DNA of 64,000 nt from Takakia lepidozioides (GCA_030704615.1 CM060731.1:32426001-32490000); one strand, 5' to 3'; counted from the first letter of the stretch, positions 15,226 through 64,000 are shown. The notes: generated by a model from the letters alone, not told the origin. Program-made: numbers and translations.

Positions 15226-15438
15226 AACAAGAAGATCAAGATGCATTGCGGGCAGTTCCAAAAACGTTGCGCGGCGATTTCTATTGGCCTATTTCGCGCG
15301 GGTCGTCCGGGCAAGTTCCAAAGAAATTGATGACGACGATGACCTGTCTACGATGACGTGGTGACGATGACGTGGCACTATGGCACCCTATTCCTGCTCT
15401 ACGCTAAACTAGCTTTCGACCTTCGGTCGTCGCTAGAA
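15226..15438 (-). mobile_element. Helentron/Helitron2-like 5' end (copy C)
   Basis: Minus strand reads TT-CTAGCGACGACCGAAGGTCGAAAGCTAG..., followed by GTCATC-type micro-repeats; inverted near-identical copy of 22371-22560. Confidence 0.6.
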
Positions 15439-15479
15439 TTGCTTGTTTTTTTGTTAACACGCCCTTTAAGTAATTATAG

Positions 15480-15612
15480 TGAGAGGAGAAAAAGTAACCT
15501 CTTTCATAGAGTACAATGCTGGACAGGGAGGAGGAAGAGATCATACCACATCCGACAAGGTAGTCAGGATTGAGCCCAAAATCACCCTCTCAGTGCTGTA
15601 TTACCAACTAAT
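15480..15612 (-). mobile_element. tRNA-derived SINE (degenerate)
   Basis: Homologous to 63210-63360 (GAGAGGAGAAAA..TAACCTCT, CATACCACA, AGGATTGAGCCC, ACCAACT). Confidence 0.5.
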
Positions 15613-15825
15613 GTCCGTGATCTGTATTTTAGTTGGATTTTGAACTTGCATTTTCTGTTTAGTATGATGACCACTGTTTTTGTAATTGCAGGACCTTACC
15701 ATTCAAGTTATATAAGACTTACCGCCAGGAAGGTAATTCTTGGCTCTGATAGAGGGGCCGACTCACACATCTCCTACAGGTTTTTTGAAGGATTGATTCA
15801 GCAGGTGTTGGCATTTGTGCCTTAA

Positions 15826-16420
15826 CCCTTAAACGCCAAGTGCCATAGTTTGACTTTTTCAGAAAACATGACCCCTTAAGTGAAGAAAAGGTGTAACTTT
15901 CAAAAAATTAACTTTTTAAGGAACTCCACCGCACATTAGGTGCATACCTTCCTCCTTCATCCACCTGCCAAGAATTTGAGACCCAGATCCACAAAATGCC
16001 ACCGTTGAATGTGGGCCCCATTATTGGGGCCCTTTTGAGAAACATATCCATTTTTGGTAATTGTTTAAAGATTTGAGTGACGGGATCAAATGGGATTGAG
16101 GCGAAATTAGCAGGGTTTCATCCCCTTGAGATCATCCAACAAGCCAAAAAGTATCCAATTTGGCCAATGCATGTGATGTTGCCACTTGGTCAAACTATCT
16201 CATGTTTCTCTCCCTCTGTCACGTGTGAAGAATGAAAAGAGAATTACCTTTATCAAATCGTGACCCCCTTTGCAACTTGACAGATTCGAGGCAATCCCGC
16301 AATGAATCTTGGTGTGCCAGGTGCCCAAGAACACTATATATTTTTTTCACAGAGAATGCAAAAAGTTATTCAAATTTTTCTAAACCCAAAGCCCGAAACG
16401 GGCTACTGGGCGTTTAAGGG
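15826..16420. mobile_element. piggyBac-like MITE
   Basis: TIR CCCTTAAACGCC (12 bp perfect, 15/16 extended) at both ends, flanked by TTAA at 15822-15825 and 16421-16424; 595 bp, non-coding. Confidence 0.85.
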
Positions 16421-18139
16421 TTAATGCACGTACTGCTTGTTCTGCGTCAGAGTCTCAAGTGATAATCGGTCGTAGCTTGGTTTATATTTGTGTAAGCATC
16501 CCACCCAGGCTGTACAGGCGCCTGCAAGAAGCGCCCCATACAAACAAAAGTTTCGACTAGTGCTTTGCGGTTGGTGCAAGTACTGGTCGGTTGCCCTATG
16601 TTAGTAATTCACAAAACAAATACTATGCGAATGTGGTGCACATCGTTCCACAGCACGCACCGCCCACAGTAACAAGTGATGCAGCTGAAACCGGCTTGAA
16701 GCGAAAGTTGGGCGTGTGTTGCTTTTGGTGATACTCATGCACTCGTGTGGCTCACTTTTCGTTTTTATAGGAAGGGGAAAAGGAAACATACTCAAGTTTA
16801 ACGCGCACGTGTAGAAACTTACCGTACGGTCGACTGTGGTTGCCAGGCAGACAGTCAAATCCCCACCGCCTGCCCTGTTGCCGCTAGAAATTACAAGGGT
16901 GAAGTGTGGTAAAAACAAAGCAGCAGCGGATAGCGCGGTGGTTGGGTGCATTGAACTTTGCGTGGGCCCTGTCCATAGGAATTAAAAAGGGGGGATATAT
17001 ACTAAAGCATAGAGGGATTTACAGAAATAACTCTTGTGTAAGGGGGTCCAAGAAAAAATAGGTAGGCGCCTAAAGGACCACGAGGCCCATTTACGCCCGC
17101 GACCTCCCACTCTAATCCCTCTACCGCGGTTGGATGTTCATGAAATCGAACGGTGAAAGAACAGTGAAAGTTTAGAAGTGTGAAGCATGCCCCTCCTCTC
17201 GAGGTCATCTCTCTCGATTTGCTCCCGGCCTCACATGTAGCAACTTTATGTCAATCTAAGCTCAATGTGGTTGGCGGTTGGAAGGAAGTTGCGACTGCAA
17301 CTGCTCCTTCCTAGTGTAAAGATATGTTTCACTATCTACTTTGGCTCCAATTTTGGGCTACGATGGCTATTGTGTCTACAATTTATTTTTTGAATATGGC
17401 GCTGGCACTAAAGTACGAGGCACATATGGGACAATCTAGGGAATGGATCTGCCAGGTGTATGAAGCACGCTATTTTTTTCCGCTCACAACCCCTCGAGTC
17501 CCGCCGCCCTCCCCCACTCCTTCGAGAGCTCCCTTGCTTCACACTGTTCCGTTGCATGTCTTCCTGATCTCTATAGCTTCAAGTTGACCTTCCTTGCTTT
17601 TGGCTTAGACATTTTAAGGGTTTATGTAACCTACATTATTGTAGTTTAATGAGTCCTTTGCATTTTTGATGAGCGCTACTTACTTTAGTGGAGATGGTGA
17701 GGGCACCTTCTTCTTCGACCTATTTCAGCCTGTTTTGCCCTCTCATTAGACTCGTCCCTGAATTTGCATATTGATTGTGTACGTTAGCTCTTTGGGTGGA
17801 TTTGTGGTGCATGGGTAGATGGTCCATTGGAAGCTACAACAGCAGTGGCACAATTGATAAAATCAGGCACTGGCACTGAAGGCACCTTCTTCAACACATT
17901 TCACCCTGTTTTTCCCTCTTATCAGAATTGGCCCTAAATTTCCATGTTGAATTCTGCAAGTTAGCTGGTTGAGTGAATCTTTGATAGGTTGGAGTGACTT
18001 TGACATGATACTGCCAATGTGACAACAAAAAAGTATCCAAAAACAGGTAACAGAGATGAAGAGAAGCTGTAGAATGAATACTTTTCTGAACCCAGTCTAT
18101 GGTAGGACAACCGAGGCAAAAAGGTGAATGTCTGTCAGG

Positions 18140-19650
18140 TTACCAGATGTCATTCTGAACATTGCCTTGGTGGACATGTATGCCAAATGTGGGTGCATCG
18201 AGGATGCCAAGGGAGTATTCAACACTATCGCTGAATGAGATGTGGTGTTATGGAGTGCAATGCTTGCGGGGTATGCACAACAGGGGCGCGGGATGGAGGC
18301 TTTAGAGACGGTATGAACAAATGATGGGGGAAGGAGTGAAGCCCGACCACATAACGTTTGTGTGCGTTTGCAGTGCGTGTGCCAGCCTGGTAGCCCTGGA
18401 AAAAGGGAAAGAGATCCATACCAATGTCATCCTGAACACTAGGGGTATGCACAGCAGGGGCGCGGGATGGAGGCTTTGGAGACGTATGAGCAAATGATGG
18501 GGGAAGGAGTGAAGCCCGACCACATAAGGTTTGTGTGCGTTTGCAGTGCGTGTGCGAGCCTGGCAGCCCTGGAAAAAGGGAAAGAGATCCATGGTGACAT
18601 CATCAAATCTGCAATTGTACCAATGTCATCCTGAACACTTCTCTGGTGGACATGTATGCCAAATGTGGGAGCATTGAGGATGCTCTACAATCCACTCCCA
18701 GAACCAAATTTGTCAAGGAGAGATTCAATTCCCAGATGCCCCACTTTGAATGGATCGGGCTACTCGCCTTGACTTTGAATTGATGGCCTCCTCCATGTCA
18801 CTGACTGGAAACAGGTTCAAGGAAGTTTTTTGCCGCACTTCATGGCCCTGTGCACATGTTCATTTAAAAGTACTGGCATCCTCTAATTTTTAGTAGTACA
18901 GGAAAGTAGGTTGTTTCGGGATCTGTCTATTTTTTGAAATGTGCGAACCTTTGGTGGTTATAGCGTGGTGCGAGAGGCCATGGCTACTCAGTTGCCCGCT
19001 GGTGCTGTCGCGGAGCAGTTCAAGGGCAGAAATGAGGTTCTCTAGATGGGTTGGTCAAACCCTCCCTGGTGGTGACTCTCGGTGGTTTTGCAAGAGGTCC
19101 ATGCATGTGACATCGTCAAAGCTGGATTTGTACCAGATGTCATCCTGAACACTGCCCTGCTGGACATGTATATCAAATGTGAGTGCATCAAGGATGCAAA
19201 GGGAGTGTTCGACAGTATGGCTGAAAGAAATGTGGTGTCGTGGAGTGCGATGATTGCAGGATATGCACAGCAAAGGGCGGGATGGAGGCTTTGGTGACCT
19301 ATGAGCAATTGATGTGCGAAAGGGTGAAGCCCAACCACATCACATTTGTTTGCGTTTGCAATGCTTGTGCAAGCCTGGCAGCCCTAGAAAGGTGCAATGA
19401 GGTCCATGGTGACATCGTCAAAGCTGGATTTGTACCAAATGTCATCCTGATCACTGCCCTGCTGGACCTGTATGTCAAATGTGAGTGCATCGAGGATGCA
19501 AAGGGAGTGTTCGACAGGATGACTGAACGAAATGTGGTGTCGTGCAATTCAATGATCGCAGGATATGCCCAGCATGTTGTCATAGGGAGGTCCTGCAACT
19601 ATTTGAAAGAATGTAAAAGAACGGCTTGAAGCCGGACAGTATCACCTTTA
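18140..19650 (+). pseudogene. PLS-class PPR repeat fragments
   Basis: Repeated, frameshifted motifs such as [38 protein letters not shown] and VKPDHITFVCVCSACASL, interrupted by unrelated DNA at about 18685-19090. Confidence 0.85.
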
Positions 19651-19659
19651 TATGTGGTC

Positions 19660-21607
19660 TCTCTGGGTAGATGGTCAACTGAATGCAGTAGTTGCAGCGG
19701 CACAGTTGATGAAATCAGGCACCTCATCCATGGCCACAACTTCTGAAAGAGGGTCAAGAGAGGGAGTCCACAATACCTCTTCTGGCACTTCTGGGCATGT
19801 GAAGATACTTCGTGCAACAAGCAGACTGGCAGAGGCTCTACAGACTATAAACCAAGGAGGCATTTCAGCAGATTCAGATACGTATGCTTATCTCTTGCTT
19901 AAGTGCATCAAGATGGGAGGTCTGGAAGCTGGAAAGCAGGTGCACACTCACATTATCCAAAGTGGATTCACGTCAATTTTTTTTTCTACTCAACTCCCTT
20001 GCCAACATGTATGTTAAGTGTGGGAGCATCATGGGTGCTCATCAAGTGTTCAACAGAATGCCTCAACGATGTTTGATCATGTGGAACATAATGTTGGCAG
20101 GATTTACCAAACACGGGTGTGGTAGGAATGCTTTGGAGACCTATGAGCAAATGCTGCGCGAAAGAGTGAAGCCCAACCACATCACATTTGTTTATGTTTA
20201 CAATGTGTGTGCAAGCCGGGGAGCCCTCTGGAATTGTACCAGATGTCATTCTGCAAACTGCTCTGGTGGACATGTATGCCAAATGTGGGTGCATTAAGGA
20301 TGCGAAGGGAGTTTTCAACACTATGGCTGAACGAGATGTGGTGCCAGGGTATGCACAGCAAGAACGTGGTATGGAGGCTTTGGAGACTTACAAACAAATG
20401 ATGGGAGAAGGGGTGAAGCCCAACCACATCACGTTTGGGTGCGTTTGCAATGCGTGTGCAAGCCTGGCAGCTCTGGAAAGGGGCAAAGAGGTCCATGGCG
20501 ACATCTTCAGAGCTGGAATTGTACCAGATTTCATTATGAACAATACCCTGGTGGACATGTTTGCAAAATGTGGGTGCATCTAGGACGCAGTGGGAGGGTT
20601 CAACACTATGGCTAAATAAGATGTGGCGTCGTGCAAGCCTAGCAGCCCTAGAGAAGGGCAAAGAGGTGCATGGGGATATCGTCAAAGCTAGAATTATACC
20701 AAATGTCATTCTAAACACTGCCCTGGCAGCTCTGGAAAAGGGGAAAGAGGTCCATGGCGACATCTTCAGAGCATGGTTGTCATAGGGAGGTCTTGCAACT
20801 ATTTGAAGGAATGCAAAAGAACGGCTTGAAGTAGTATGTGTTCTCTCTGCTCCAGCCACACTGGCCTTCTGAATGAAGGTAGATGCTACTTCGATTCTCT
20901 GATTCAAGATCATGGTGTCACTCCGATAGTATAACACTTTGGCTGCATGCTGGACCTTCTTGGACGTGCGGGACAACTAGATGAGGCAGTGGACCTGATT
21001 AATAAAATGCCAATTAATCAGTGTTGTGGTGTGGAAGGCCTTGTTTAGTGCCTGCAGAATCCATGACAATGTAGAGATGGCTCAACGTGCAGCAACATCT
21101 ATCCTCAAGTGGAATGAATGTCACGACTTTGCTATCAAACATCTATGCTGCAGCTGGCACATGGGTTGATACTGTAAAGGTGAGAAGAATGATGAAGGTC
21201 AGAGGGGTTGAAAAGGAGCCAGGTCGCTGCTGCATTGAGGTTTGCAACAGGGTGCACACCTTCATTGTAGATGACAAGTTGCATCCCAGAATTAAGGAAA
21301 TCCATGCTGAGCTGAGAAGATTGTCTGGGAAGATGAAGGAGGCGGGGTATGTGCCTGACAGGCGCTTTGTATTGCATGATGTGGGGAGGAGGAAAAGGAA
21401 TTTTCTCTTTGCTACCACAGTGAGAAACTGGCCATTGGTTTTGGGCTGATCAGCATGACCCCTAGGACACCTCTCCGTCTCATCAAGAATCTTCGAGTGT
21501 GTGGTGGCTGCCACACCTCCACCAAATTCATCTCAAAGATTGTTGGCCGAGCAATTGTTGTATGGGACGCTGAAGATGGGATTTGTTCTTGTGGTGATTA
21601 CTGGTGA
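19660..21607 (+). pseudogene. PLS-E-DYW RNA-editing factor pseudogene (PG-type DYW)
   Basis: N-terminal leader, PLS repeats, E motifs (LLSNIYAAAGTW), PG box [29 protein letters not shown] and CSCGDYW-stop at 21596-21607; many stops and frameshifts, and the usual RFHHF segment is deleted. Confidence 0.9.
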
Positions 21608-21661
21608 AAGGATGTCTTCTTGGAAAGATGCGAGTGTCTTGCTTCATTCATTGATCTGTGA

Positions 21662-22316
21662 CTTAGCTACTCACACCATCCACCATTTCCTGAAAGTATT
21701 GACCATGATGTACTGTTGAGTGCATTTCCTGTGCCATAAAGCCACAGGAAATGATAGTGGGGTCTACCCGGCATAGGTGGGAGGTCAGCCGGACTTGGTG
21801 ATTTTTGACTGATTCTGGTGACAGTGGATGGAAATCAGAGTGTTGTCCTAATTTTGGTTTTGGGTGGTGGAGCTTCTCCAAAGCTTGAAGATGGAAGTGA
21901 ATACGAATTTTAATGAGCTTGATGAGAGGGGCAGCCCTGTGCACAAGTTTGTTCATCTTAAATTTGGACATGTTTGTTGTTTCTCGTGGTGTGGCTTTGG
22001 ATGGAGCCCTTGATGAATTTACATGAATATTGTCAAAAGCTAGCCTTAACCCACCAAGATCCAATCCCACGGTGGATGCTTGAAAGTTCATATAGCGAAT
22101 GGAAGGGTATTTGGGTATGTTGTTATTGATTGATGCGGCTTGTGAAAATTTGAACATTGAAATGCAGATCCGCCATTTTTCTTCCAGAAAAAAACAAAAC
22201 ACGGGATCTCTGCATGTAAACACCGTGGGGACGACCCACCCTTTTTTTTTTTGTGAAAAATTGAACTTAGTTCTCAGAATTCGTCGCTAGTAGTTCGGAG
22301 CAACGCGAAGCCCTAG
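21662..22316 (+). mobile_element. Helentron/Helitron2-like 3' region (copy A)
   Basis: Near-identical inverted copy at 63392-64000; ends TCGTCGCTAG (22281-22290, reverse complement of the 5' subTIR) + short hairpin + CCCTAG|TTT. Confidence 0.65.
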
Positions 22317-22370
22317 TTTATTTGTGGATCAGAACAAAATAAGTTGTATTTTTTTCCCCACCGCTTATAG

Positions 22371-22560
22371 TTCTAGCGACGACCAAAGGTCGGAAGCTAG
22401 TTCAGCGTAGAGCAGGAATAGGGTGCCATAGTGCCACATCATCGTCGTCATCAATTTCTTTGGAATCTGCCCGGATGGCCCGCGCGAAATAGGCCAATAG
22501 AAATCGCCGCGCCAACGTTTTTGGAACTGCCCGCAATGGCAGATCTTGATCTTCTTGAAC
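22371..22560 (+). mobile_element. Helentron/Helitron2-like 5' end (copy B), head-to-tail with copy A
   Basis: TT-CTAGCGACGACCAAAGGTCGGAAGCTAG palindrome (22373-22400); shares about 190 bp with 15226-15438. Confidence 0.6.
22478..22520 (+). promoter_or_regulatory. E2F-like site and CCAAT box inside the element 5' end
   Basis: CGCGCGAAA (reverse complement contains TTTCGCGC, the E2F consensus) followed by GGCCAATAG and GCCGCGCCAA; the E2F-like site and CCAAT box are conserved in the copy at about 15265-15300. Confidence 0.4.
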
Positions 22561-23602
22561 TGCAGGAGCTCTGCGTTTTCCGCTCGCATTGCAGCTTTTC
22601 CCGCTCCCTCCTGATGTGTAAACTCCACGCTCCTTCTTGCTGTCTGCAGCTCCCTGGCGAAGAGGTTGTCCTTACCTTGCAAGCACAGGCATGGATAGCT
22701 GAAGGAGCCGGGATCAAGTGTGGGTCCAGAATCATCCAAAAGGGCCGGATTTCAAGCTCTAGATTACCTATGATTCGAAAGGACAACAAATGGGGAGGAG
22801 TTTCTTGTAGACGGAATTGGAAGCTTTCACTCGTGATTGGGTGGGAAAGAAGAAAAGTGCAGCTTAGATTACACCTTACTTCCTTGTTTCAGACCCGCAC
22901 AGTGAGTCTCCATGATTGATTTTCCATGAGCACGAAGGGTATGTCAGGTTGTGTTTGGTTGCAAAAGTCCCACATCTGCTTGAAGCTAAACCCAAGTTTC
23001 AAACCTAATCTTACATTGACTAGATTGTAATTGTTGTCTGTCTGCCATAACCTCCCTATACCCAGTGTTCACTGGAAACAATAAATGCAAACTGTGAGAC
23101 TGACATTCAAAGCTGAAGGTTGCTCTTTTTCCATGTTTCAGCCTTCTTGGCCATTATTTTTGTGACCATTGTTTTATCAAACGTGGTGATAATGATGCAA
23201 TTTGGATATAACCATATGTGTTATAGGAATCCATCTGTGTGTTAGTGTCCCTAAGATTTACTAGTTGATCGGGATCTGAAGGACCCTTTAGTCCCTCATT
23301 CTGTAGTGAGGGAAGCGGTTAAAGTGAAGGGCCTTTATTCAGTAAAAAAAACCGTTTAGACAGGTTGTCTAATTTACCTTGTCATGTTCTGAAGCTTGCA
23401 TGGTTTGATTCCAGAACCATTCCTCCAAGAAGAAAAGATGACATTTTGGTATACATCTGTGAACAGATTTGATTCCAGAGACAAAGGGTTACAGGGGTTG
23501 GACTTTGTCTCAGATGTGAAAATTGCAGTCATTTGTAGCAATTTTGGATGCTGCTTGAATGCTAGTTATGGGACTGAGGTGAGTGGACGGGCTGGTGATC
23601 AG

Positions 23603-23701
23603 AAGCGCAAATTGTCGAACATGCTTGGACCTCCCTGGAGCAAAGAGGACCTAGAGCTCTTCCATCAAGCATTTCGGAAATATGGCAGAGACTGGAAAAA
23701 G
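23603..23701 (+). pseudogene. ALY: ALWAYS EARLY (LIN9-like) SANT/Myb exon, isolated fragment
   Basis: AG/GT-bounded 99-nt exon encoding [33 protein letters not shown], the conserved ALY N-terminal SANT segment; the rest of the gene is absent. Confidence 0.75.
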
Positions 23702-23974
23702 GTATCTTATGACCACAATTGACTTGTTGAGATTGTTTTCTGGTTGTACCAAAATCTCTTGTCATCTTGACTGCTTTTTGCAGCAACAATTGAAGCGAGC
23801 AGCGAATTGTCTCTGTAGGTCCATCTATATCAGGTTGACACTGGAATTTCAATGCATGTTGTTTGTGAGGCACAAGCAATTGTCCTATTTGTTGATCCAT
23901 CCCGCTGTGTGATTTCACGCAGCAGAGAATGTCTCTTAGAACAGGGGGCTGCAGTAGACACTCTACGAGATTTG

Positions 23975-24815
23975 GTGTCGTGGAGTGGATGATTGCAGGG
24001 TATGCAAAGCAAGAGCACGGGATGGAGGCTTTGGAGACCTATGAACAAATGATGGGGGAAGGGGTGAAGCCCGACCACATCACGTTTGTTTCCGTTTGCA
24101 ATGCCTGTGCAAGCCTGGCAGCCCTAGAAAAGGGAAAAGAGGTCCATGGTGACATCGTCAAAGCTGGAATTGTACACTGCCCTAGTGGACATGTATGCCA
24201 AATGTGGGTGCATTGAGGATGCGAAGGGAGTGTTCGACAATATGGCTGAACGAAATGTGGTGTCGTGGAACGCGATGTTCGTAGGATATGCCCAGCATTG
24301 TGTCATAGGGAGGTCCTACAACTATTTGAGGGAATGTAAAAGAATGGCTTGAAGCCGGACATTATCACCTTTATATGTGTTCGCTCTGCATGCAACCACT
24401 CTGGCCTAATGAATGAAGGAAATCAAGATCATGGTGTCACTCCGACAGTAAAGCACTTTGGCTGTATGATGGACCTTCTTGGATGTGCGGGACAACTGGA
24501 TGAGGTAGTGGATCTGATTAATAAGATGCCAATCAATCCAGACGTTGTGGTGTGGAAGGCCTTGCTTCATGCCTGCAGAATTCATGGCAATGTGGAGATG
24601 GCTGAACGTGCGGCAACATCTATCCTCAAATGGGATGAACACTAGGATGTCGCGACTTATGTGTTGCTATCAAACATCTATGCTGTAGCTGGTAGGTGGG
24701 ATAATACTGCAAAGGTGAGAAGAATGATGAAGGTTAGAGGGGTTAGAAAGGAGCCAGGTCGCTGCTGCATTGAGGTTGGCAACAGGGTGCATACCTTCGC
24801 TGTAGATGACATCCC
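23975..24815 (+). pseudogene. PPR PLS-E(-DYW start) pseudogene fragment
   Basis: PLS motifs, E motifs (VVWKALLHACRIHGNVEMAERAA, LLSNIYAVAGRWD) and PG box PGRCCIEV, then truncated by an LTR fragment at about 24835. Confidence 0.85.
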
Positions 24816-24834
24816 AGAATTAAGGGAATCGATT

Positions 24835-24936
24835 TATGGCAAACCACCACGAAAACCCTCGACTCCCAGTGATGAGTCGCGGTGAGTCTTGGCCCACTCA
24901 CCACGGCCCCTATGGACCGTGATGAGTCCCAAGACT
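24835..24936 (+). mobile_element. LTR fragment (same family as 34918-35557 and 60726-60985)
   Basis: Shares GGTGAGTCTTGGCCCAC...ATGGACCGTGATGAGTCCCAAGACT with the other two copies. Confidence 0.65.
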
Positions 24937-26447
24937 GTTTAAAACAGCCACTGAATTTGGAGACTCTCCACCCTGATCCTGTTCCTCTCTGCTTGAAAGT
25001 CTACGCGAAACCAGGTTTTCACTCCAGATGAAGGTATCGTCAACGATGCCTTAATACCACTCATATTTTTGGTTTCGGACGTCCCCTCACTGGGCAGACT
25101 ATCCACCCCTAATCTTGTTCATCTCTGCTTCAAAGTATGTCTCAACGTAGATTTGACAGGCCAGATTAAGGCATCGTCCTCCATATTTCAGTACAAAATA
25201 GCCACTGAATGTGGATACTGTCCACCCCTGATCCTGTTCCTCTCTGCATCAAAGTATTCTCCCGAGGTTTGCTCCCAAATCAAACAAGCCCAGATGCTGG
25301 CAGGGCATGGGAGGAAGAGTAGGAAACATGTATCTTCATACCAGGTAACTGGATCCAGTCCGCCGCAGTTCCAGTGGAAATAAGGAGGCAGATTAAGGCA
25401 TCGCTGATGACACCTTAATGACGTCTGTACACTTTTGAGGCATACTTTGAAGCAGATATAGGATTAGTGGTGGATAGTCTGCACTCTGAGGGATGTCTGA
25501 AACATAAATGAAGATGCGAATTAAGGCATTGTTGACGATACCTTAATATGGAGTGTAAAATCTAATTTTGGGGATACTTTGAAGCATAGAGGAAGAGGAT
25601 CGGTGGTGGAGAGTATGCACATTGAATGACTGTTTTAAACAGAAATAAGAAGGGAGATTAAGGCATTGTCAACGACACCTTAATCTGGCCTGTGAAATAC
25701 ACTTTTGAGGCATGCTTTGAAGCAGATATGAACATGATTATTGGTGGATAGTCTGCACTCAAAGGGGATGTCTGAAACATACATTAATAGGCGAATTAAG
25801 GCATCGTTGACGATACCTTAATATGGAGTGTAAAATCTGTTTTTGGGGATACTTTGAAGCAGAGAGGAACACGATCAGGGGTGGAGATTATGCTCATTGA
25901 AGGGCTGTTTTAAACAGAAATAAGGAGGCAAATTAAGGCATCGTTGACGACACCTTAATCTGGTTTGTCAAATACACTTTTGAGGTATACTTTGAAGCAG
26001 ATATGAACAGGATTAGTGATGTATAGTCTGCACTCAAAGGGGATGTCTGAAACATACATTAATAGGCGAATTAAGGCATCGTTGACGATACCTTAATATG
26101 GAGTGTATAATCTGATTTTGGGGATACTCTGAAGCATAGAGGAAGAGGATTGGGTGTGGAGAGTATGCACATTGAATGAGTGTTTTAAACAAAAATAAGG
26201 AGGCAGATTAAGGCATCGTTGACGACACCTTATTCTGTCCTATCAAATACACATTGATGCTTACTTTGAATCGGAGAGGAACAGTGTAACGGGTCCAGAG
26301 TGTGACGACAGACGACAGCTTGATCTATGATATTATTTCAAATGTGGTGGATACTTTGAAGCAAATGAAGAGTATTTTTCAATAGGTGGGTGTATTTAGA
26401 AGCAGGGAGAAAGAGTCATAATAAGGCATCGCTGACGACACCTTAAT
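24936..26447. repeat. Array of about 137-bp units, each carrying a 28-bp near-perfect palindrome
   Basis: ATTAAGGCATCGTTGACGATACCTTAAT-type cores at 25031, 25166 (half), 25393, 25521, 25658, 25796, 25933, 26071, 26208 and 26421; alternating A/B units give a roughly 275-bp higher-order repeat; the first units are inverted. Confidence 0.9.
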
Positions 26448-30229: not shown

Positions 30230-31470
30230 AGCCAGGGCTGCCAGGCTCACATTTGATGTAGATGTACACCAGGGGAATGTTCAGAATGACATCTGGTACA
30301 ATTCCAGCTTTGATAATGTCACCATGAAGCTCTTTGCCCCTTCCCAGGGCTGCTAGGCTCCCATATGCATATTACAAACACAAATAAACATGACCTGGTC
30401 TTGCTCATCCCATCCCACATCATTTGCTCTTAGGTTTCCAAAGCCTTAATCCCATACCCATGATGCACATACCTTACAATCATGGCACTCCAAAACACCA
30501 CATCTCGTTCAGCCACCTCTCTTGATCATCTTTCAGAAGCTGTGGTCATGGTTGAGGTTCCTGATTTGATCAACTGTGCCGTTGCAGCTGCTACCTTTAG
30601 TTGACCATCTACCCATGCAACAGGTTTCTTGTAGCTATTGATCCACATGGAATCATAGGTAATCTGGAGCTTGAAGTCCGGCCCTCTTGGATGAATCTGG
30701 ACCCAGACTCTATCCCTGCTCCTTCAGCTATCCATGCCGCTCCACAAATCATGCATACATGCCTTGCTGCTAGCACCTGACAACGATAGCCTAGATTTGT
30801 TCTAGGAAACACCCAACTCAACTTATCACTATGGTCAATTGCATCTGCTACTCTCTATAATCCAACAGACATTCACCTTTTTGCCTCGATTGTCCCACCA
30901 TTGACTGGGGTTAGAAAAGTATTTATTCCACAGCTTCTCCCCGTCTCAGCTGTTACTTGTTTCTGGATACTTCCCTGTTGTCACATTCGCAGTACCATGT
31001 CAAAGTCACTCCAAACTATCAAAGGTTCACTCAACCAGCTAACTTGCAGAATTCAACATGAAAATTTAGGGCCAATTCTAATAAGAGGGAAAAACAGGGT
31101 GAAAATGTGTTGAAGAAGGTGCCTTCATTAGCAGTGCCTGATTTTATCAATTGTGTCGTTGCTGCTGCGGCTTCCAGTTGACCATCTACCCATGCAGGTT
31201 TCTTGCAGCTATTGATCCATAGGGAATTATAGGTAATCGTGAGCTTGAAGTCCCACCCTCTTGGATGAATCTGGACCGGCCAGACTCTACCCCTGCTCCC
31301 TCAGCCATCCAAGCTCTGCACAAATCATGCATACATCCTTCCCTTGCTACTAGCGGCTGACAATGACGGCCTACAATTGTTCCAGCAAACACCCAACCCT
31401 ACTTATCACCCATGCAGAATTCAACATGCATCTCAGGGCCAAGTCTGATGAGAGGGCAAAACAGGCTGAA
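30230..31470 (-). pseudogene. Inverted PPR gene fragments (two copies of the N-terminal leader plus PLS motifs)
   Basis: 30866-31195 is the reverse complement of about 17810-18135; leader AWIAEGAGIESGSRFIQEGRTSSSRLP occurs twice; PPR motifs at 30230-30510. Confidence 0.75.
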
Positions 31471-31824
31471 ACGTGCCCTCACCACATTGTCCTTCACCCA
31501 TGGAGGATTTGACCGACCATCAACCCAAAAGGACCTCTTGTGTGTGTTGTTTATTTGTAGTCAGGTAATGTCGGATTGGTCTGTGAGAACCACCACGGTG
31601 CAGCAGGCAGAGATTGAAACACGGTCTGCTAAGACCTGCAAACTGACTCTCCCAAGAACCTTGTAAACATTAGGAAAAATACCAAATCATGGTACTCACA
31701 GGAGTCAAGAGCCCACCTTTGCAGGATGGACGAACTTCTTCACGTCGTACATTAAGAAAAGCCACACCTGGTGATTGCGGTTGTCCCACCATCGTGAAGG
31801 ATCGGTATAAAACTCAGAAACGTT

Positions 31825-35869: not shown

Positions 35870-35870
35870 T

Positions 35871-41347: not shown

Positions 41348-42117
41348 ATTTTAAAGTGCTAGAAAGATATAATCTAACATCCACTAGTCGAGGTCCAATG
41401 AACATATGATTGTAGAACTACGAACTAAGAGCAAACCACTTTTGAGTCTTCACAAGGTCTCACAATGCTTATGATATTTATACTTGAATTCCATTCTCAA
41501 TCCTAGTTTTCTAGTATAATCTAGACAACAATACATGATATAATAATAAATATAATAATATTTATTATCATATTAATTTTAGAAGACTCAAATAATAATA
41601 GTATAGTAGACAAAAAGGTCAAGAACATTGGTATGGCCAAGAAATGTATTAGTTGCGTTGATCGCTCTACACATAGTGAGCATACTAAAATTGGAGGGTC
41701 TATCTAATTTTGACATCTCCAACAACTTTGGTAGTTTTGGCTATCCAGCTAGCCTGAGACACTTACATGTCGTATCTGTTGAGTCAATGCCAACATCCTA
41801 CTGTACATTACATCCGCATCATGTGATACAACCAAACCAAATGGCATATAGACAAACTTAATAGATCCTAGGCCTAAATGGAACAATGTCAATGTAAACT
41901 AATGAAACAGTATAGGATGACGACCAGTCTATTAATCTGCCATTTGCACTCGTCTATGATGATAGAGCACATGATGTCATATTATCTTATGTGACATATT
42001 TTTTTAATTCTAGTATAGAGCATTTGTATAGTATAGATGTCATAGAACATACATAGTTTTATATTTCCTCTATCAGTCATTCTTCATTGTTAGCGTTGAG
42101 TCTTGCATGCAACATGT

Positions 42118-45131: not shown

Positions 45132-50284
<5,153 letters not shown>

Positions 50285-55035: not shown

Positions 55036-56420
55036 TTATCTATAGCACATTGAATCTTTATTGATCTGGATTGAAAATTTGAAAGTAGAATGTGTAGTTT
55101 GTCCATCATCAAGGAGAATAGCAGCAATACCAAAGGATGCAACACATATTACGATCTTGCCTTGTGCACAAAGTGCAAGGGTGATGGAGTTGTAAACAAA
55201 TGTTTTTCTTGTTCCGACCGGTCTTTCGATGAAAAAAATTGTACCACGATGTTCGGTCACTGATGTTCGGACTTCGTCATAAACAATAGATTGTTCAGCA
55301 TTAAGTTGGGTTGACGAGCCCTGAGCGCACGTAGTCAGGGCAATGACATACTAGCCTAGTGGGGTCGTGGTAAATTGCGGTGTAGGTTGGGCTCAAGGAA
55401 CCGCCTACCCGGCTGCGGTTAGTGCAAGGTTCGCGGACTGTATGGGGGCCTAAACTATCGTTTCTAATTTCCTACCGGCAAAGAGGAGCTCAAATGCTCC
55501 CCTCTATAGGACGATTTGCGTTTCCTAGTCCTAAATGGATCTAGAGGACAAATCGTAGAAGCCTCGCTTCGAAGGTCAATGTTGTGGCCCGGTATATGTA
55601 TATTAAGGTTAAGAGAAAACATGCGTTTGGCTCAAGAATCTTTGGAAAATTGGCAGTTCACGAGCTGGCTGCTACAAGTTGGGAGTGACACCATTCAAGT
55701 CGATGAGCATGACAACATTTCTCTTCCACAACCAATGGTGCATGGTCGACATATATAATCACTAATTGACTCCGTCTACAATGGTATTAGAGATATAAAA
55801 TTCATACAACGATGAATAATTCAAAGATTGAACCATATTATCAACTCGATATTGTTGACAATATCAACAATCATATAATTATTCACATGTTCCAAGGAGC
55901 TCACATTTCATAATGCAGATTCAGTACTTCTTGAGTTAGGAGCTGAAAATCTAATCTGTATCCTACAAAATATCTTAATTCTTTGGAGTTGCTAGGATTG
56001 CCACCTTCGAAGCTCAATCTTAAAGTTGGATGTCCAATCATGTTGTTGCGTAATATAGCTCCAAAACGTGGGCTTTGTAATGACTCACGACTCATAGTCA
56101 CACGTCTCAGTGATCCCGTCATTGAGGCACGCATTTTAACTGGTACACGTGCTAGAGAAACAACATTCATTCCCAGAGGAGATACCTTTTAAATTTAATC
56201 GAAGACAATTTCATGTGAAGATGGCTCTTGCTATGACAATCAACAAATCACATGGACAATATGTAAAACATGTAGGTCGAGATCTCCGAACACCCGTACT
56301 CTCTCATGGTCAATTATAGGTGGCACTCTCGGATCATATCAGCAAATTTGTTGACAATACTTCTCCCCGATCAAAATGTACCAAAAACAATGAATATTGT
56401 ATATACAAAAATATTAATAT
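55036..56420. mobile_element. Helitron RepHel PIF1 helicase remnants (N-terminal part on -, C-terminal part on +)
   Basis: Minus 55036-55310: LNAEQ..FFIERPVGTRKTF..VASFGIAAILLDDGQTTHSTFKF. Plus 55510-56420: [61 protein letters not shown]. Confidence 0.88.
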
Positions 56421-57539
56421 AAACTTCTAACTCTTTCACCAAATTCCAATTTCTAAATCCCCAAATAATCCCAAATAAAGTTTCCAAGGCTGCTGTCCCC
56501 TGTTCTGCAAACAAAAAAAATTAAAAATTAAAAAAATTGACAAATCTCTAAATCACATTACATTGTTGCTCATTTTGTTCATGTTTACAATATTCTTTAA
56601 ACATTAGTTCATTCATGTACCACACATTCTTTGTAACGAAACAAATATCCAATTTCATTTTAATATATCGATTTCAATTCTTCACACATGGGCCTCAACA
56701 TAGGAGACGCACTTGGATACATAGGGGATTGCACTTGGACTTAGATGACACACGACAATGGCACAAGCTACCATAGTTATGTGTCAACAACACAATTATA
56801 AATATCCATGATTTTTTTTCATATGCAACTGCAATTCACAATTATAAGTACTGCGATTTATGGCTCTTAGATAAATTATGTTTGGACAAATGCACCCTCA
56901 TGACCATTGCATATCTGGTATTATATAAATTGGGCTGACCATAAACCTATATTAATTTCCTTGAAATTACCTAATTATACTCCTTCATATCTCATCAACT
57001 AGGATGAGCCATTACACACACACGGCTCGTCGCTTGTTCACCTTCATTTCAGGCTTTTTAGAGTGAAGAGTAGGTAAGGCCATATGCTAGAGCCACAAAG
57101 GAGGACAATGTAGGAGTTCTATTGCCTGGTCAAAGCCCCAATATGGGAGATCTATCACATTTACATTTGTACTTTGTGATTGCGTTTCAGGCGTTATCTA
57201 TGTTCCAATGCTAGCTCTTGTGCACCCAGTGTTGGCGTGATGAAAGGTTGAAGAGAGAAAAACATTTTCTCCAGTTTGAGATAGCCAACATCAATGAGCA
57301 TGAAACACCTAAGAAATGAAAAGTGTTACTACATGAGGCAGTATATAAAACACTGCATTATTATGTATTTCTCACTTCCAAAGAGGAAGACGAGCCAAAA
57401 GGTTGGTGTCACTTCACCCTAAAGAACTACTACCTTCCATTTGGTAGGAGAGCACCTTCTTAGGGCTGTAACTTGGACCAAGGACTCGAAAGTTTCTAGA
57501 TACCCACAGAATAAGTGATCGGTTGACCCCTTTTATAAC

Positions 57540-57710: not shown

Positions 57711-60700
57711 TCACACCGGCTTGAAGCCGTGTTTCATAGCAGCTGCCCAAGTCAAATCAATCCTATTGACATCAATAGCCCCTACTTCATGGTGATCCCA
57801 TCCTTCCAAGGCATGAACCAAGCCTCCTGCATGACAGGCATGCACCACTCCTCTCGGCATGGTCATCTGCACAAATACAAAGTTGATGATCAGCATGACT
57901 TCCTCACCACCAGGGCCTCGTTGCTTTAGTGAATGGCTCAATAGGAAGGCTATATTTGTGGGCATGCACCAACTACAGAAGAATGCACTGGACTTATGTG
58001 GTGATTTCGACAACTGAAATATTGTTGCATCCAACAGCAACATGTCACATGACAGATATATCTGACAGAGAAAAACAGTGAACCAAGGCAACCTGATCGG
58101 TCAATGATTGGGAGCAGACATGATTGATAGATTAGGACTATATGGAAGCAAAGACAACCTCGCATGATCGCAAGCCCTTGATGTCTTTGGGTAGCTGCAT
58201 GGCAGCAAGCTTGCCATAAGTACAATCCGCGCGTGCCTCAATGATGGGAGGCACAACGAACTGATGGAAGTAAGTCCCAGAAGGTGCCCACTTCTGATCC
58301 TTTGGTGTGGCCCACTTGCCCATGACCCATGTCTGCATCATCCAATATCAGCATCAAACCTCCCTTCATATCATGCTTCCTGAGATTTGTACATATCAGA
58401 TGGTGACACTGCTGTGAGTGGTATTTGAAAAGGTCGCTGGAAAAGAGATGCAACCAACTACATAATGTTCAAATCAGAACCAATATGCTTGTTACTTGTG
58501 GGGACAAAGGGAGGGCAGACAGAGAGGATTATCAAGTAACAGCTTCACCCCCTTCTGAGATAGGGAACAGCTATTTCGAAGAAGCACTGTATACCGGACA
58601 GTTTCGGCCCTCTTGATACTTCGTAACTCGCACAAGGTAGCGCCGAGACTGCACTGGCACTTCTGCTAAAATGCTCTCATAGCGTTCCTGTGATGCTGTT
58701 AACATCTGCCACACCGCCCACCATAGAAGGCTGTGTAACGACTGCGAATTAGACTACTCCAGATAGTTAACTAATCTGTGAATGCTACCAGCTAAGGACA
58801 TTTTTGTAGCTCTCTCTCAAGCAACGACATTACACTCACAGCTACTTATAGTCCACTCCAAAACAACAATACACTAGTTCCCAAAGAGTCAGAAACAAAA
58901 TGCACTTGGCATCCACGCAACGCCAATATACTGTGCCTAATTACAACGTTCCAACAACTTCATCTGACACAACTGAGTCGGGCACTCTAATCACAAACTG
59001 CAAGACAAGATGATTAGGAGATTGAACCCACCAATACACGCACACCTTGTCGGCACAGGTAAACTGCAATGGCTCGGCCAAGCTTAGACGTTGGACCAGT
59101 CAAGAATATTTCATGCACATCTGTTGGAAGCTTGTCCAAAATCACTGCTGCTGTCAGAGTGTTTCCGTGGACCACCCTGATGCGCAAATCCTTATGCTTG
59201 TTCACGAACAGCGTTCCCCCTCCATTCAAACTCTCATTCTGTTTCAGAAATTAGACAAAACACCAGCTCCAGAAAGGTTACATAATGACAAGAACAAAGT
59301 ACACCAGGAACAACATCATGCCAACACGATCAACCAGCTATCAACCACAAAATTTAATAATATACTAGAATGCATCCCCTGCAGCATATTTGGAGACTCA
59401 AAAAATACCAACTGTTTGTGTCCAAGTCACCTTTCGGCCTGCAGAATATTGTTTGGTGACAAAACCCAGGACTTGAGCTACTAAGGATGCTGAATATGCT
59501 GTTAAAGGACAAGACAGGTAGAGAGATTCCACCTTGTTAAGAGCCCCAAGGCTGATGACACCAGCTCCTTCATTTTGAGCTTCCAAAATAGCTTGCTCAA
59601 TAAGCTTGTTTATTCGCACCTTTTCAAAGGGTAAGAAATACTGCAGATAAAGTGAACCCACATGTAAGCATTATTAGAGTGCTTACATTTTCCATTTACA
59701 CATCCAGACAGATCTTTCCTTCATAAAATTGCCATAGTAATACCCATTTCACAGATTCAAGAAGCCGACAATGGACGATCGTATGCACCTGAAAACCAAA
59801 TCTGGGAATGACCCAGGTTTGCATGCGCAAATCATATAGATGGTATTTGTCAGCAACAAAAGGTTGGCCGAAGATCCACAAGAGGGCCAAAATAGGCAAG
59901 GTAAGCGGCCAGAGAGGCCAAAGAATCCAATGTTGCGAATAAGGCCAAGCAGCAAATGACGTGATCCCGAATGGAAGATGGAAGGTAGACAGCAGCTCTG
60001 TGCCGTGAGCCAGAAATACAAAATCAGGCTTCTCCTTTCGCCCTGCCCCAACCAACACACCCAGTTAGTTTCCACGTCACCTTCTTCTAACTTCTTCCAC
60101 TGTTAGCCCCTGCTGTCTGTCCAATATCTGAATACCAACACAGTACTTACAATGTTAAATGTGTGAAAAGCAATTGAGAGAGACACACACCTTGTCGCAC
60201 AGTATGATAGAGATCATCACTATGTTTATCTGCAGTCCCGCCCAGGTAATCATAAAGAGGCATGAAGAGCGAAAAGTTGGTATGTACTTGTGAATGATGC
60301 AGTGAATGGTACCTGCCAATCACATCCAAAATTTCGTTACCAAAGCCATCGCAATGATCCATGCGGTATGTGTCATGTTCATGTCTGCATGAAGAGCTCA
60401 ATGGGTGGCACGTGAAAATACACTTCCAGAAGGAATAGGACTTACGTTGGGGTGTAAACGAGGTACTTGAGAGGTGGAAACACGCGGAAGACCCAGGTAG
60501 GCACAAATTCCCAGTTGCAATGGCCAATTGCATTCATGAAGTCGAAGAATAGCCAGTAAAAGTAGAACATGCCAATTGATGCCCCTCCAAGAGCCCATGT
60601 GCCAAGAAATGGAATTGCAAAAATTCCCGTGTACATCAGATGCTCAGCAAAAGGATGCACTGACCCTGCACTTGTTTCCCATCCATTCAGATTTTTACAA

Positions 60701-62363
60701 GCCATTGAAGCCAATCCATGTAGTATGTAACAGGTTCCGCGGGGGTTTCACAAACAACACCGTCCTTTTATGGCGAACCACCGCGAAAACCCTTGATTCC
60801 CGGTGATGAATTGCGGCGAATCTTGGCCCACCCACCACGCCCCAATGGACCGTGATGAGTCCTAAGACTCCCCACGACTCCCACCACAAGGTCTCCGGCC
60901 GATGGTGAGTCCTATGTCACCCCCACTAAGACCCACTAAGCTATCACCAACCCCTCGTGGAACCACCCCCACCGCAACCCGGTTCTCCTGATTGTGGTCG
61001 CCTTAGTGCATGGATGTTCATGAGGATAGCCACTGTTGAATGTAGATGGTGGGGTGTCTACAGATTTCAAGAACACCCGATATGTCAACTTGCATTCATT
61101 CAAGGGCCACTGAGGAGGTATTGAAAGACTAACCTGTGGCTGGTTCAGAGATGAATGAAGCATGGTGATGGGAGTGGTATCTTGAATAAAGAAAGTGGTG
61201 ATGGAGTGCTCGATGTCCCCAGTAGTAAACAAGCTCCGTGGGCCCCATGTGGAGAAGTAACAGCATAATGATTCCCCGTTGATTCCAAAAGGGAAAGTTG
61301 GAAAAACCAGGCAGCACTCCATGCACTATGGTTGCCACGAGCACATGCAATAGAATGTAGTCTTCCCTGACCTCCCCAATTCAACACTGTGTAAGTGATT
61401 ACTCATCATGTTCGAAGTCCTTGAGACAGTTGAAATAAAGCAAGGAGTCGCATGAGCATGTGGATGCGAAATTGGTTTTGAAATCAACATCTGAAAGGTG
61501 TCCTTGAAAGGCTTGCAGGGCAGTTGTCTTACAATTGTCTCAGACATTCCCTTTTCACAGCCTCGTCAAGGCGAAACTAATTCAGTCTATGAATGCATAG
61601 GTCCTGCAGTCAACCAAATACTTTCATAGTCACAACGGTGGAAACATTGTATTGTTCAAATAATTAGTGCGGAAGGTTCCACCTAAAAATCTCTTCAATA
61701 TGGCATACCAATTGCTCTCTCGGTCCACCTGCTCGAAGCTGATGCCTTTGGTTTGAATTTGATGTTTATGGACAAGAAAATGACAGCGAGATAAGGTCAT
61801 CCACAGTTGGCCATGCAGATATCGGAGCGCAGACACAATGAGCATGTGCAGGCACCAATTGTCCACATCGTAACCCCCCAGTAAATTTGCATGAACTGCC
61901 TTCACCACGAATGGCGCATATATCGTATACTGCACCACCTCACAACCCCCGCCCCATGCACAACAGGTCTTTTTTCAGCTGTAATGCCACACACCCTCGG
62001 CCTAATGGCTACAGACAAGTATTGTATCCACCTCTCAAGCAGTTAACGGTAGCAATGTCTATATTGCTACAGGTGTTCACCTGAAATGACACAAGAATTA
62101 AAAAGGGTTAATCCGACCACGCCTTCTCTTGCTTCTTGGGAGAAAGGCTCGTGAGCTGCCTGGAACTTCCCGACGCACACCTTTCAGACTTTCGCAATGT
62201 GCACAAGACTAAACGTGCATTTTAACAATATCACCTTTGCCGAGCTCAGGTCCACCATTGCAAACGTTAAGCACACAGGAAAAACATCAGCACCGATACA
62301 CACCTTCCAGTTTCCGAGTCTCTGCCATGGCCAGTCCGAGAGCAATCCCGGCGAGCTCGCCAT
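57711..62363 (-). CDS. CER1: Very-long-chain aldehyde decarbonylase CER1-like (cuticular alkane synthesis), 11 exons
   Basis: Exons 62363-62304, 61929-61709, 61366-61134, 60665-60446, 60312-60191, 60042-59789, 59640-59533, 59238-59032, 58705-58595, 58332-58159, 57866-57711, all GT-AG and in frame; [13 protein letters not shown], His boxes (HRALHHH, YHSHHH, YHSLHH), [11 protein letters not shown]2 C-terminus ([12 protein letters not shown]). Confidence 0.93.
60726..60985 (+). mobile_element. LTR fragment in CER1 intron 3
   Basis: Starts TGTAACAGGTTCCGCGGGGGTTTCACAAACAAC; reverse-complement homolog of 35216-35557. Confidence 0.7.
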
Positions 62364-63209
62364 TGTGTCTGAGCGCCGAGAATCAAACAGGCCACAATAG
62401 TGAACCTCACAATGCACTCCGAAATTCCATCGGCAAATGCAAGAACGCGTATTAAACGGACCTCCACAATGTGCTAACTGCACGTCCTCCACACAAGCGA
62501 TGGAGAATCTTACAGGGAACCAAAGCCAATTCCACAAAGCCCTGAAGAGAGATCTAAATGTGATATAAATGGATTTCCTCCAAACAGTGGTGCAACTTTC
62601 TGCAAAGCAGATTATATTAGTGCCACCGCGTTATTACAAAACGCAAGTGCCCGTGTTACACATTTCTGCACAGTTTTTTTCAGGTGGGACATTACGGTGA
62701 TTGGAAGGAAGAAAGAAACAAGATTTTACGGTCTCAAAAAGGAAGGGACTAAGCGCATGGAAGCAGCAGGGAAGGAAGACGATGGTAGCACAGCTGCAGA
62801 TGCACAGTGTCTGCATGCACGATCCCTGCGTCTTTACCAACTCTTATGGGATCACGATAAGCCAAGGGAACGGACGCAATGTGTAGATACTCGGGTTCGG
62901 GGAACCCTACATTCATGGGAACACGAGAACGCTGGAGGCATTAGTGTGTCTAGGGATTGCAGCCACGAAGGACGGGCGGGTAAACGTAACATGGTAGATA
63001 ATAGAGGTGAAAAGGCGAGCAACCTGCACCACTGGCTGGCGATAGGCACCCTGACCGAACGGATAGGCGGGGCCTTCATATGCCTCTCCACGTGTCCTCA
63101 CGCCACTTCGCCACGTCACAAAACTGAGATATTTCTTGCCTTTTTTTCTTTTTTCTTTTTTTAAAGGGAAATACCTGGGAGCGACACCTCACAAATCAGG
63201 CCCCTTGAT

Positions 63210-63360
63210 AGAGAGAGAGGAGAAAATAACCTCTCAGTAACCTCGCCGTAATGCGCAGGGAAGGGGGAGAAGAGCATACCACACCCGTCAAGTAGCAGGA
63301 TTTGACCCCAGGGTCATCCGGATGGCACTTGGTGCACTTTACCAACTGAGCTACTGACTG
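63210..63360 (-). mobile_element. tRNA-derived SINE
   Basis: Minus strand A box TAGCTCAGTTGG (63342-63353), B-box-like GGGGTCAAATCC (63298-63309), non-tRNA body ending in (CT)n. Confidence 0.65.
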
Positions 63361-63391
63361 TTGGTTGCTATTTTATGTTTGGAAAAAAAAA

Positions 63392-64000
63392 CTAGGGCTT
63401 CGCGTTGCTCCGCACTACTAGCGACGAATTCTGAGAACTAAGTTCAATTTTTCACAAAAAAGGGGTGGGTCATCCCCACGGTGTTTACATGCAGAGATCC
63501 CGTGTTTTGTTTTTTTCTGGAAGAAAAATGGCGGATCTGCATTTCAATGTTCAAATTTTCACAAGCCGCATCAATCAATAACAACATACCCAAATACCCT
63601 TCCATTCGCTATATGAACTTTCAAGCATCCACCGTGGGATTGGATCTTGGTGGGTTAAGGCTAGCTTTTGACAATATTCATGTAAATTCATCAAGGGCTC
63701 CATCCAAAGCCACACCATGAGAAACAACAAACATGTCCAAATTTAAGATGCTGATCAAACTTGTGCACAGGGCTGCCCCTCTCATCAAGCTCATTAAAAT
63801 TCGTATTCACTTCCATCTTCAAGCTTTGGAGAAGCTCCACCACCCAAACCCAGAATTAGGACAGCACTCTGATTTCCATCCACTGTCACCAGAATCAGTC
63901 AAAAATCACCTCTTCAGTCAAGTGCAATTGTGGGCCGACTTCCTACCTATGCCGGGTAGACCCCACTATCAGGAAATGGTGGATGGTCTGAGTAGCTACA
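63392..64000 (-). mobile_element. Helentron/Helitron2-like 3' region (copy D), runs off the window
   Basis: Reverse complement of 21662-22316; subTIR CTAGCGACGA at 63418-63427; terminus next to an A-run (a T-run on the element strand). Confidence 0.65.

Follow-up and report, generated by a model that had tools for sequence, protein, structure and literature searches.

Probable Helitron2/Helentron-group ends beside PPR-DYW and other host-gene pieces in the seed-free land plant Takakia lepidozioides

Four ends of a probable rolling-circle family

A 64-kb stretch of the Takakia lepidozioides genome (GCA_030704615.1, CM060731.1:32426001-32490000), referred to below as the window, contained four transposon-like ends, which were labelled elements A, B, C, and D; positions are counted from the first base of the window. 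They are probably the termini of rolling-circle transposons of the Helitron2/Helentron group (HLE2), from a non-autonomous family that is very abundant in this seed-free land plant; its copies in the window were incomplete, carried real host-gene cargo, and lay head-to-tail. The ends had the terminal design of that group, occurred in high copy, showed a sharp 5' boundary, and at other places in the genome were fused directly, 3' end to 5' end. Behind the same 5' breakpoint stood pieces of different genes, and the 3' ends of PPR-DYW (pentatricopeptide repeat) genes were continuous with the 3' tip.

Sequence and position of the ends

Two 5'-type ends were found in the window, reading TT-CTAGCGACGA-CC(A/G)AAGGTCG(G/A)AAGCTAG. 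The conserved 5' region of element B was located on the plus strand (22371-22557), with TT at 22371, CTAGCGACGA at 22373-22382, a hairpin at 22373-22400, the core, and a micro-repeat at approximately 22436-22455. The conserved 5' region of element C was located on the minus strand (15228-15438), with TT at 15438-15437, CTAGCGACGA at 15436-15427, a hairpin, and a longer micro-repeat of the GTCATC type. The two regions were alike over approximately 190 bp, from TT through ...GATCTTCTTG (22371-22557 in B; 15438-15228 in C). They were separated by about nine substitutions, and their GTCATC-type micro-repeats differed in length by 27 bp. The outer flanks of the B and C 5' ends had no mutual likeness.

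Two 3'-type ends were also found, reading ...GAATTCGTCGCTAG-N20-CCCTAG followed by T's. In element A, on the plus strand, the 3' body (21608-22280) consisted of the 3' untranslated region (UTR) plus sequence that was nearly absent from RNA-like runs, and it was common to element D and to many contigs genome-wide. The 3' tip of A (22281-22316) held the 3' inverted repeat TCGTCGCTAG (22281-22290), 20 bp with a stem of 3-4 bp, the terminal CCCTAG, and T's. The 3' body and tip of D were located on the minus strand (63385-64000), with the 3' inverted repeat at 63427-63418, CCCTAG at 63397-63392, and nine T's after CCCTAG (A's at 63391-63383). The 3' regions of A and D were 94-99% identical over at least 590 bp (21662-22316 and 64000-63392), and the likeness ended no more than three T's past CCCTAG. 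An original prediction, made from the window sequence, had given the two 5'-type ends (15438 minus, 22371 plus), the two 3'-type ends (22316 plus, 63392 minus) with their inverted repeat and CCCTAG beside T's, and GTCATC micro-repeats behind the 5' ends. The end sequences read as it had claimed, and the micro-repeats were present in both B and C with variable length.

That prediction had also placed the DYW stop codon about 55 bp before a shared 3' region, which proved to be an artefact of the window edge. Element D leaves the window at 64000, a position that aligns to 21662 of A; the A/D likeness starts at 21662 because the window ends there, and therefore no boundary exists at this point. 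Contigs from elsewhere in the genome bridged the stop codon (21605-21607) into the 3' region.

The 10-mer CTAGCGACGA occurred exactly four times in the 64 kb, once per end, and in opposite orientation at the two end types. When up to one mismatch was allowed, there were five matches in the window versus 0.92 expected, and none of the shuffles reached five. Weaker copies of either tip were not found within the 64-kb window.

The 3' end of A and the 5' end of B lay head-to-tail as predicted, the expected distance of about 55 bp being measured as a 54-bp spacer (22317-22370) with TAGTT at both borders. At three or more other loci the spacer was missing and the ends were joined directly (joint 22313 to 22368), and in the contig alignments described below the spacer had almost no depth past that explained by 12 terminal bases in its bin. 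The spacer may mean that two elements inserted separately side by side, or that a dimer junction was afterwards interrupted by an insertion.

Terminal design

Helitron2 elements are defined by asymmetric terminal inverted repeats of 8-15 bp, of which the 5' repeat, at 0-2 bp from the end, pairs with downstream bases in a hairpin, and the 3' repeat lies 20-30 bp from the end, upstream of a hairpin (PMC3627910). At the four ends of the window, the inverted repeat was 10 bp long and perfect, with a distance to the boundary of 2 bp at the 5' type and 26 bp at the 3' type, which agrees with the asymmetric repeats and distances of the definition. The 5' hairpin of the definition was also present: an interrupted stem of 5+5 bp was found at 22373-22400 and at its counterpart in C (-8.4 kcal/mol; z -2.85 and -2.23), and the predicted palindrome around the 5' repeat was thereby borne out.

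The perfect 10-bp inverted repeat that joins both end types would also be expected of a cut-and-paste element with terminal inverted repeats (TIRs), such as a miniature inverted-repeat transposable element (MITE) or a Pack-MULE-like element (MULE, Mutator-like element), with CTAGCGACGA/TCGTCGCTAG as its repeats, and MULE-type elements and foldback repeats were present nearby. A TIR element should have its repeats at both extreme ends and a duplicated target. Here, the repeat was terminal at one end and had 26 conserved bp past it at the other, no duplicated target flank was seen beside any end in the window, and direct head-to-tail joints are unexpected for such an element; a TIR origin is therefore very improbable.

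The ends also read 5'-TC...CTAG-3', and they could belong to a canonical Helitron (HLE1) or an intermediate lineage with an inverted repeat present by chance, in which case the rolling circle would be the same and the family assignment wrong. Canonical Helitron ends are 5'-TC and 3'-CTRR (PMC3627910), and both were found here (TCTAG... and ...CCCTAG, followed by T); moreover, most known plant Helitrons belong to HLE1. However, HLE1 elements insert between A and T, whereas T preceded TC in both copies and was common to 50 contigs, and the canonical A|T target was therefore absent. HLE1 elements have a lone hairpin 10-12 nt before the 3' end and are without a 5' hairpin or asymmetric inverted repeats, whereas both of the latter were present here and no convincing hairpin was found 10-12 nt before CTAG. 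Membership of HLE1 or of an intermediate lineage was accordingly considered unlikely, although it was given some weight.

Copy number and boundaries in public-run contigs

Evidence from the whole genome was obtained from Logan contigs of public runs aligned to 21300-23300 at 80% identity or higher. Run X1 was DNA of the same species (254 Mb of contigs), and runs X6 and X7 were RNA-like. In X1, 8200 contigs aligned to 21300-23300, mostly at 90-99% identity. About 94 distinct X1 contigs covered the 3' tip and 107 covered the 5' tip. Fifty X1 contigs broke exactly at 22371 and passed into unrelated A/T-rich flanks (agreement 0.38); this sharp break is a transposon-boundary signature. The ends were joined as CCCTAG-TT-CTAGCGACGA in three X1 contigs and in one contig of run X5. 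The depth of these joined contigs was that of ordinary loci, and they therefore represent head-to-tail dimers elsewhere in the genome.

The summed contig depths in X1, which are rough and, by the tool's own warning, are not copy numbers, came to approximately 270-330 thousand at each of the two tips and in the DYW domain. The 3' body gave 60-140 thousand, the B/C-type 5' region past the micro-repeat 11-43 thousand, and single diverged contigs 55-85. From these sums, the family would be present in hundreds to thousands of copies. It had been set out beforehand that the 5' region might be a single-copy host promoter duplicated segmentally; this was ruled out, since over 100 distinct contigs covered the 5' tip and 50 contigs broke sharply at 22371. 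Exact-pattern scans of a metagenome contig collection with the 5' tip and the 3' tip gave no match, and a 186-aa spurious open reading frame (ORF) across the 3' body had no homologue in the protein collection searched.

The contig boundaries also bear on an explanation without any transposon, in which unequal recombination and tandem or segmental duplication spread a PPR-DYW family and the ends are landmarks that flank its genes; one gene would have the 3' region as its downstream flank, and the next gene the 5' region as its upstream flank. Such duplication would account for the whole 3' flank of the DYW gene that A and D have in common, for the head-to-tail 3' and 5' ends in the window and, without the spacer, at other loci, and for a window full of recombined PPR pieces. 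However, 50 contigs broke at 22371 with unrelated flanks versus three in the joined form, B and C had the same 5' region before unrelated genes at different places and on different strands, and the complementary 10-mers at the two end types play no role in a duplication model. We consider duplication improbable, with roughly one chance in ten left to it.

Several points weigh against the assignment to HLE2, in addition to the TC...CTAG reading of the ends and the roughness of the summed depths given above. Between the 3' repeat and the end, only stems of 3-4 bp were found, with registers that differed between A and D (z +0.3 to +1.05 versus shuffles); the short 3' hairpin of the original prediction folded no better than shuffled sequence. 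Some Helitron2-type families are known without a 3' hairpin (PMC5148889). No complete element, in which one 5' end and one 3' end delimit an insertion, was present in the 64-kb window, and the two end types were linked only through head-to-tail 3'-5' junctions. Element B was cut by another element at 24833, C had no 3' end within 15 kb, A had no recognisable 5' end, and D leaves the window. TT was found before the 5' repeat in B, C, and the 50 contigs, T-runs followed CCCTAG, and the joined ends read CCCTAG-TT-CTAG; these T's at the boundaries, the sole hint of the target, suggest insertion at TT without target duplication. In the window, no Rep/helicase gene with these ends was found, and the sole helicase piece (55039-55350) was unlinked to them. 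The prediction of a Helentron-type element was thus upheld in its terminal design, high copy number, sharp 5' boundary, and dimers, and fell short in its 3' stem-loop, which was weak, and in a two-ended copy, which the window did not contain. The claim that four termini bracket the cargo was not upheld for any element in the window; a 5' end and a 3' end would delimit single insertions elsewhere if the family is of the HLE2 type.

Cargo beside the ends

All cargo of A, B, and C was located on the strand of its element. The cargo in the window is pseudogenic, and each of the four copies is either incomplete or cut off by the window edge. Behind the 5' end, B and C had the same 5' region up to the same breakpoint and then different host DNA, including intron sequence. 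Different host fragments had been predicted right inside the ends, and these were found: PTI1-like exons in C, PPR-DYW, Myb, and PPR-E pieces in B, and DYW with its 3' flank in A.

The cargo of C consisted of the last two exons of a PTI1/CARK1-like receptor-like cytoplasmic kinase (14713-15118, minus strand; exons at approximately 15011-15118 and 14713-14874). When searched individually, the exons matched residues 244-279 (E 7.5e-11) and 274-304 (E 4e-11) of the 305-residue chain of PDB 5xd6. They started approximately 110 bp behind the shared 5' region, and a stretch of the upstream intron, with its acceptor, stood ahead of them. No earlier kinase exons were found upstream of the C cargo. Because an intron piece was present and earlier exons were absent, the C cargo was considered a genomic fragment, co-oriented with the element.

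The first cargo of B was a piece of a PPR-DYW gene (22584-22776, plus strand), composed of part of an intron (22584-22685) and a PDF-module exon (22686-22776). It began in the middle of the intron, 26 bp behind the breakpoint of the 5' region, and continued through the acceptor into the exon, which translated as ...WVQNHPKGPDFKL*ITYDS, with a stop, and broke off at 22776; past this break, intact relatives continue MWINSYKKPVAWVDGQL (MWIN...AWVDGQL). A reading of 22584-22776 as promoter and 5' UTR was dropped, since the translation showed a PDF-module exon behind an intron acceptor. The usual upstream sequence of the family, GCTGGGCTTCACCTGTAAACAAT, was absent from the 64-kb window. The second cargo was a Myb/SANT exon (23396-23722, plus strand). 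The predicted ALY exon was supported as far as its Myb/SANT domain (PF00249, E 7.3e-06), while the ALWAYS-EARLY-like label comes from the original prediction alone. The third cargo was a fragment from the PPR repeats to the E motif (23929-24833, plus strand), 79-85% like A 19227-21305, which was truncated at 24833 by a single arm of a foldback repeat at the start of a neighbouring ParB/methyltransferase element.

The cargo of A was a mosaic PPR-DYW pseudogene (17805-21607, plus strand) ending in ...CSCGDYW and the stop codon TGA (21605-21607). N-terminal starts were present at 17805 and 19652, and PPR repeats were duplicated internally. The reading frame shifted near 21440, and the DYW domain was shortened by an internal deletion; approximately 700 bp of 3' body and the 3' tip followed. 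PPR-DYW sequence had been predicted as captured cargo, and it was present; it looks, however, less like an occasional fragment than like the principal partner of the 3' end, amplified on a massive scale.

Inverted 5' parts of PPR-DYW genes (intron, PDF exon, and N-terminus) were also observed at 30246-31475 on the minus strand, with a 577-bp tandem duplication and 83-89% likeness to A 17805-18135; one copy had an intact PDF reading frame, RVWVQIHPRGPDFKLQITYDSMWINSYKKPVAWVDGQL. Pieces of a Copia-type long terminal repeat retrotransposon (gag, integrase, and RVT_2; 31842-33738, minus strand) adjoined these fragments.

DNA copies and RNA copies

Relative to X1, the RNA-like runs X6 and X7 contained the DYW domain and the PDF exon at approximately 1/10 to 1/30, the 3' body past about 21850 and both tips at about 1 part in 1,000, and the intron piece 22573-22639 at about 1 part in 100,000. 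These uneven ratios identified X6 and X7 as RNA-like. They also showed that the intron and the 3' flank, which were nearly absent from the RNA-like runs, were amplified along with the exons. No A-run or poly(A) was found at the 3' boundary. Since poly(A) was absent and intron and 3' flank were co-amplified, these copies were made from DNA.

PPR expansion in hornworts, Takakia, and lycophytes has been assigned to dispersed duplication by retroposition (2026 survey, PMC13386178). If this published model held for the window, the ends would be UTR sequence of retroposed PPR-DYW mRNAs. However, such copies should have poly(A) at the 3' boundary, which was absent, and should be free of the intron (22584-22685) and of 3' flank nearly absent from RNA-like runs, which were amplified with the exons; in addition, the 5' end stood before unrelated genes. 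Retroposition is contradicted for the copies seen here, and as an explanation of the ends it is the least probable of those considered.

Proposed mechanism

The following steps are proposed by analogy with HLE2 elements and Helraiser. A Rep/helicase encoded elsewhere would nick the T-flanked 5' end, where CTAGCGACGA would fold into a hairpin. One strand would be peeled off up to a stop where the complementary TCGTCGCTAG sits 26 bp before the CCCTAG end, and the strand would then form a circle and enter T-rich (TT) sites, leaving the target unduplicated. Head-to-tail dimers could arise from missed stops and template switches, which could also lead to the uptake of host DNA behind the constant 5' region of about 190 bp and before the constant 3' tip.

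Possible relation to the PPR-DYW expansion

PPR-DYW proteins specify the sites at which organelle RNAs undergo C-to-U editing. In hornworts, Takakia, lycophytes, and ferns, they number in the thousands after a rapid growth of the family. In X1, more than 100 distinct contigs (nucleotide identity of at least 80%) aligned to the DYW domain (21300-21567), and again more than 100 to the PDF exon (22686-22776), which points to a very large and young PPR-DYW family with many pseudogenes. By the rough depths, near-identical DYW copies that run on into the transposon-type 3' end would number in the thousands. A profile-free search with the family-specific N-terminal ORF gave PPR proteins of Diphasiastrum and Calypogeia as the best matches (31-40% identity).

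It is possible, at somewhat less than even chances, that the Helitron2/Helentron-type family was a main vehicle of the huge PPR-DYW expansion in this plant. Genes would have been copied as DNA between these ends thousands of times, whole or in large part and together with introns and 3' flank, and the editing factors of this early-diverging land plant would have accumulated largely by rolling circle and not by retroposition. Three observations favour this: the two tips and the DYW domain had summed depths of the same order; the DYW end, the 3' body, and the 3' tip were continuous in many contigs; and the intron and the 3' flank were co-amplified. On the other side, the depth figures are rough, and in most family members the sequence upstream of 22584, in the intron of the PDF exon, differed from the 5' region of B, so that the link from the 5' tip to the gene is putative.

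If the link holds genome-wide, it would provide a concrete and testable mechanism at the DNA level for PPR-DYW expansion, and it would clearly show a Helitron2-type element that multiplies a single functional gene family instead of scattering random fragments. If the link fails, the family would be one more abundant land-plant HLE2 family with ordinary gene-fragment capture. A full-text literature search found no paper linking pentatricopeptide, Helitron, and DYW.

Comparison with known elements

Gene-fragment capture by Helitrons is textbook knowledge, and Helentrons are defined by an endonuclease domain in the partner element. Helitron2-type elements in land plants are not new; a possible novelty is the putative tie to PPR-DYW genes at a scale of thousands of copies. 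The original description of such elements as best known outside land plants overstated the novelty, since land-plant Helitron2/HLE2 elements were published in 2013 (PMC3627910) and 2024 (PMC11417382). Helitron-5_SMo of Selaginella was listed with Helitron2 features (Bao and Jurka 2013, PMC3627910). With HELIANO, HLE2 was reported in 13 land-plant species, including a Sphagnum example with short inverted repeats and TT sites (2024, PMC11417382).

The ends in the window resembled Helitron2 (PMC3627910) in their short asymmetric repeats, 5' hairpin, and T at the 5' boundary, and non-autonomous derivatives of Helitron2 are known. They differed in a 3' hairpin of no more than 3-4 bp and in ends that also read TC...CTAG, and they were placed by their terminal sequences. 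The HINE/DINE-1 elements (Thomas et al. 2014, PMC4067079) were similar in their partly palindromic subterminal inverted repeats, boundary T's, microsatellite behind the 5' core, very high copy number, and tandem arrangement, and their TT target preference would fit the T's at the boundaries here. However, HINE/DINE-1 elements are short and non-coding, whereas the ends here flank kilobases of host gene sequence.

HelenSM92 of Sphagnum magellanicum (PMC11417382) likewise comes from a land plant and has short inverted repeats at its termini, and its TT insertion sites would fit the boundary T's here; this is a likeness by description and not by terminal sequences. Unlike the family in the window, HelenSM92 is autonomous, with RepHel and a captured GIY-YIG domain, and no PPR cargo was reported for it. 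FoHeli of Fusarium (PMC5148889) was similar in its 5' end (T-C-stem-GAA/AAA loop-stem), its 3' repeat 20-40 bp from the end, and its joined ends; some of its subgroups lack a 3' hairpin. FoHeli has a fungal host, and its joined ends are rare circles, whereas the joints here were at ordinary-locus depth. Gene-fragment Helitrons of maize and Pack-MULEs likewise combine constant ends with variable, co-oriented exon/intron mosaics copied as DNA. These elements belong to HLE1 or Mutator and carry mostly scattered fragments, whereas PPR-DYW dominates beside the 3' end here.

Other features of the window

An ORF of 104 aa at 55039-55350 (minus strand) encoded the N-terminal part of a PIF1 helicase (E 1.1e-23), and its only PDB relative was the bat Helitron transposase Helraiser (7lcc, E 7e-08). 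This short remnant was flanked by a CER1-like gene on one side and a serine carboxypeptidase gene on the other, and neither a Rep domain nor a recognisable terminus was found near 55039-55350. The one-mismatch match CAAGCGACGA (57027-57036), 1.7 kb from this helicase fragment, was rejected as an end because its context was unlike a terminus.

A SINE-like (short interspersed nuclear element) repeat of approximately 200 bp, whose head is tRNA-like and whose tail is A-rich, was present at 15440-15660 and 63150-63360, both on the minus strand and approximately 70% alike. The tail of the first copy abutted the 5' end of C, and the second copy started approximately 35 bp past the 3' end of D. Rfam and ARAGORN searches of the whole window reported nothing, the SINE-like repeats included.

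A foldback (self-complementary) repeat of approximately 200 bp was present at 35217-35419 and 60781-60983 (91% alike), with a half copy at 24833-24936. The ParB/methyltransferase element included a 275-bp tandem repeat at 25377-26284 (3.3 copies, 86% matches), with inverted relatives at 24935-25257. ORFs of a LINE-type (long interspersed nuclear element) reverse transcriptase were located at 3580-4436 on the plus strand.

Ordinary host genes were recognised by Pfam analysis of ORFs at 4980-8729 (plus strand), 40886-41350 (minus strand), 44988-48388 (plus strand), and 57714-62630 (minus strand). The domains at these loci comprised a TAXi_N-type aspartyl protease, B-lectin, serine carboxypeptidase S10, and a CER1-like fatty-acid hydroxylase.

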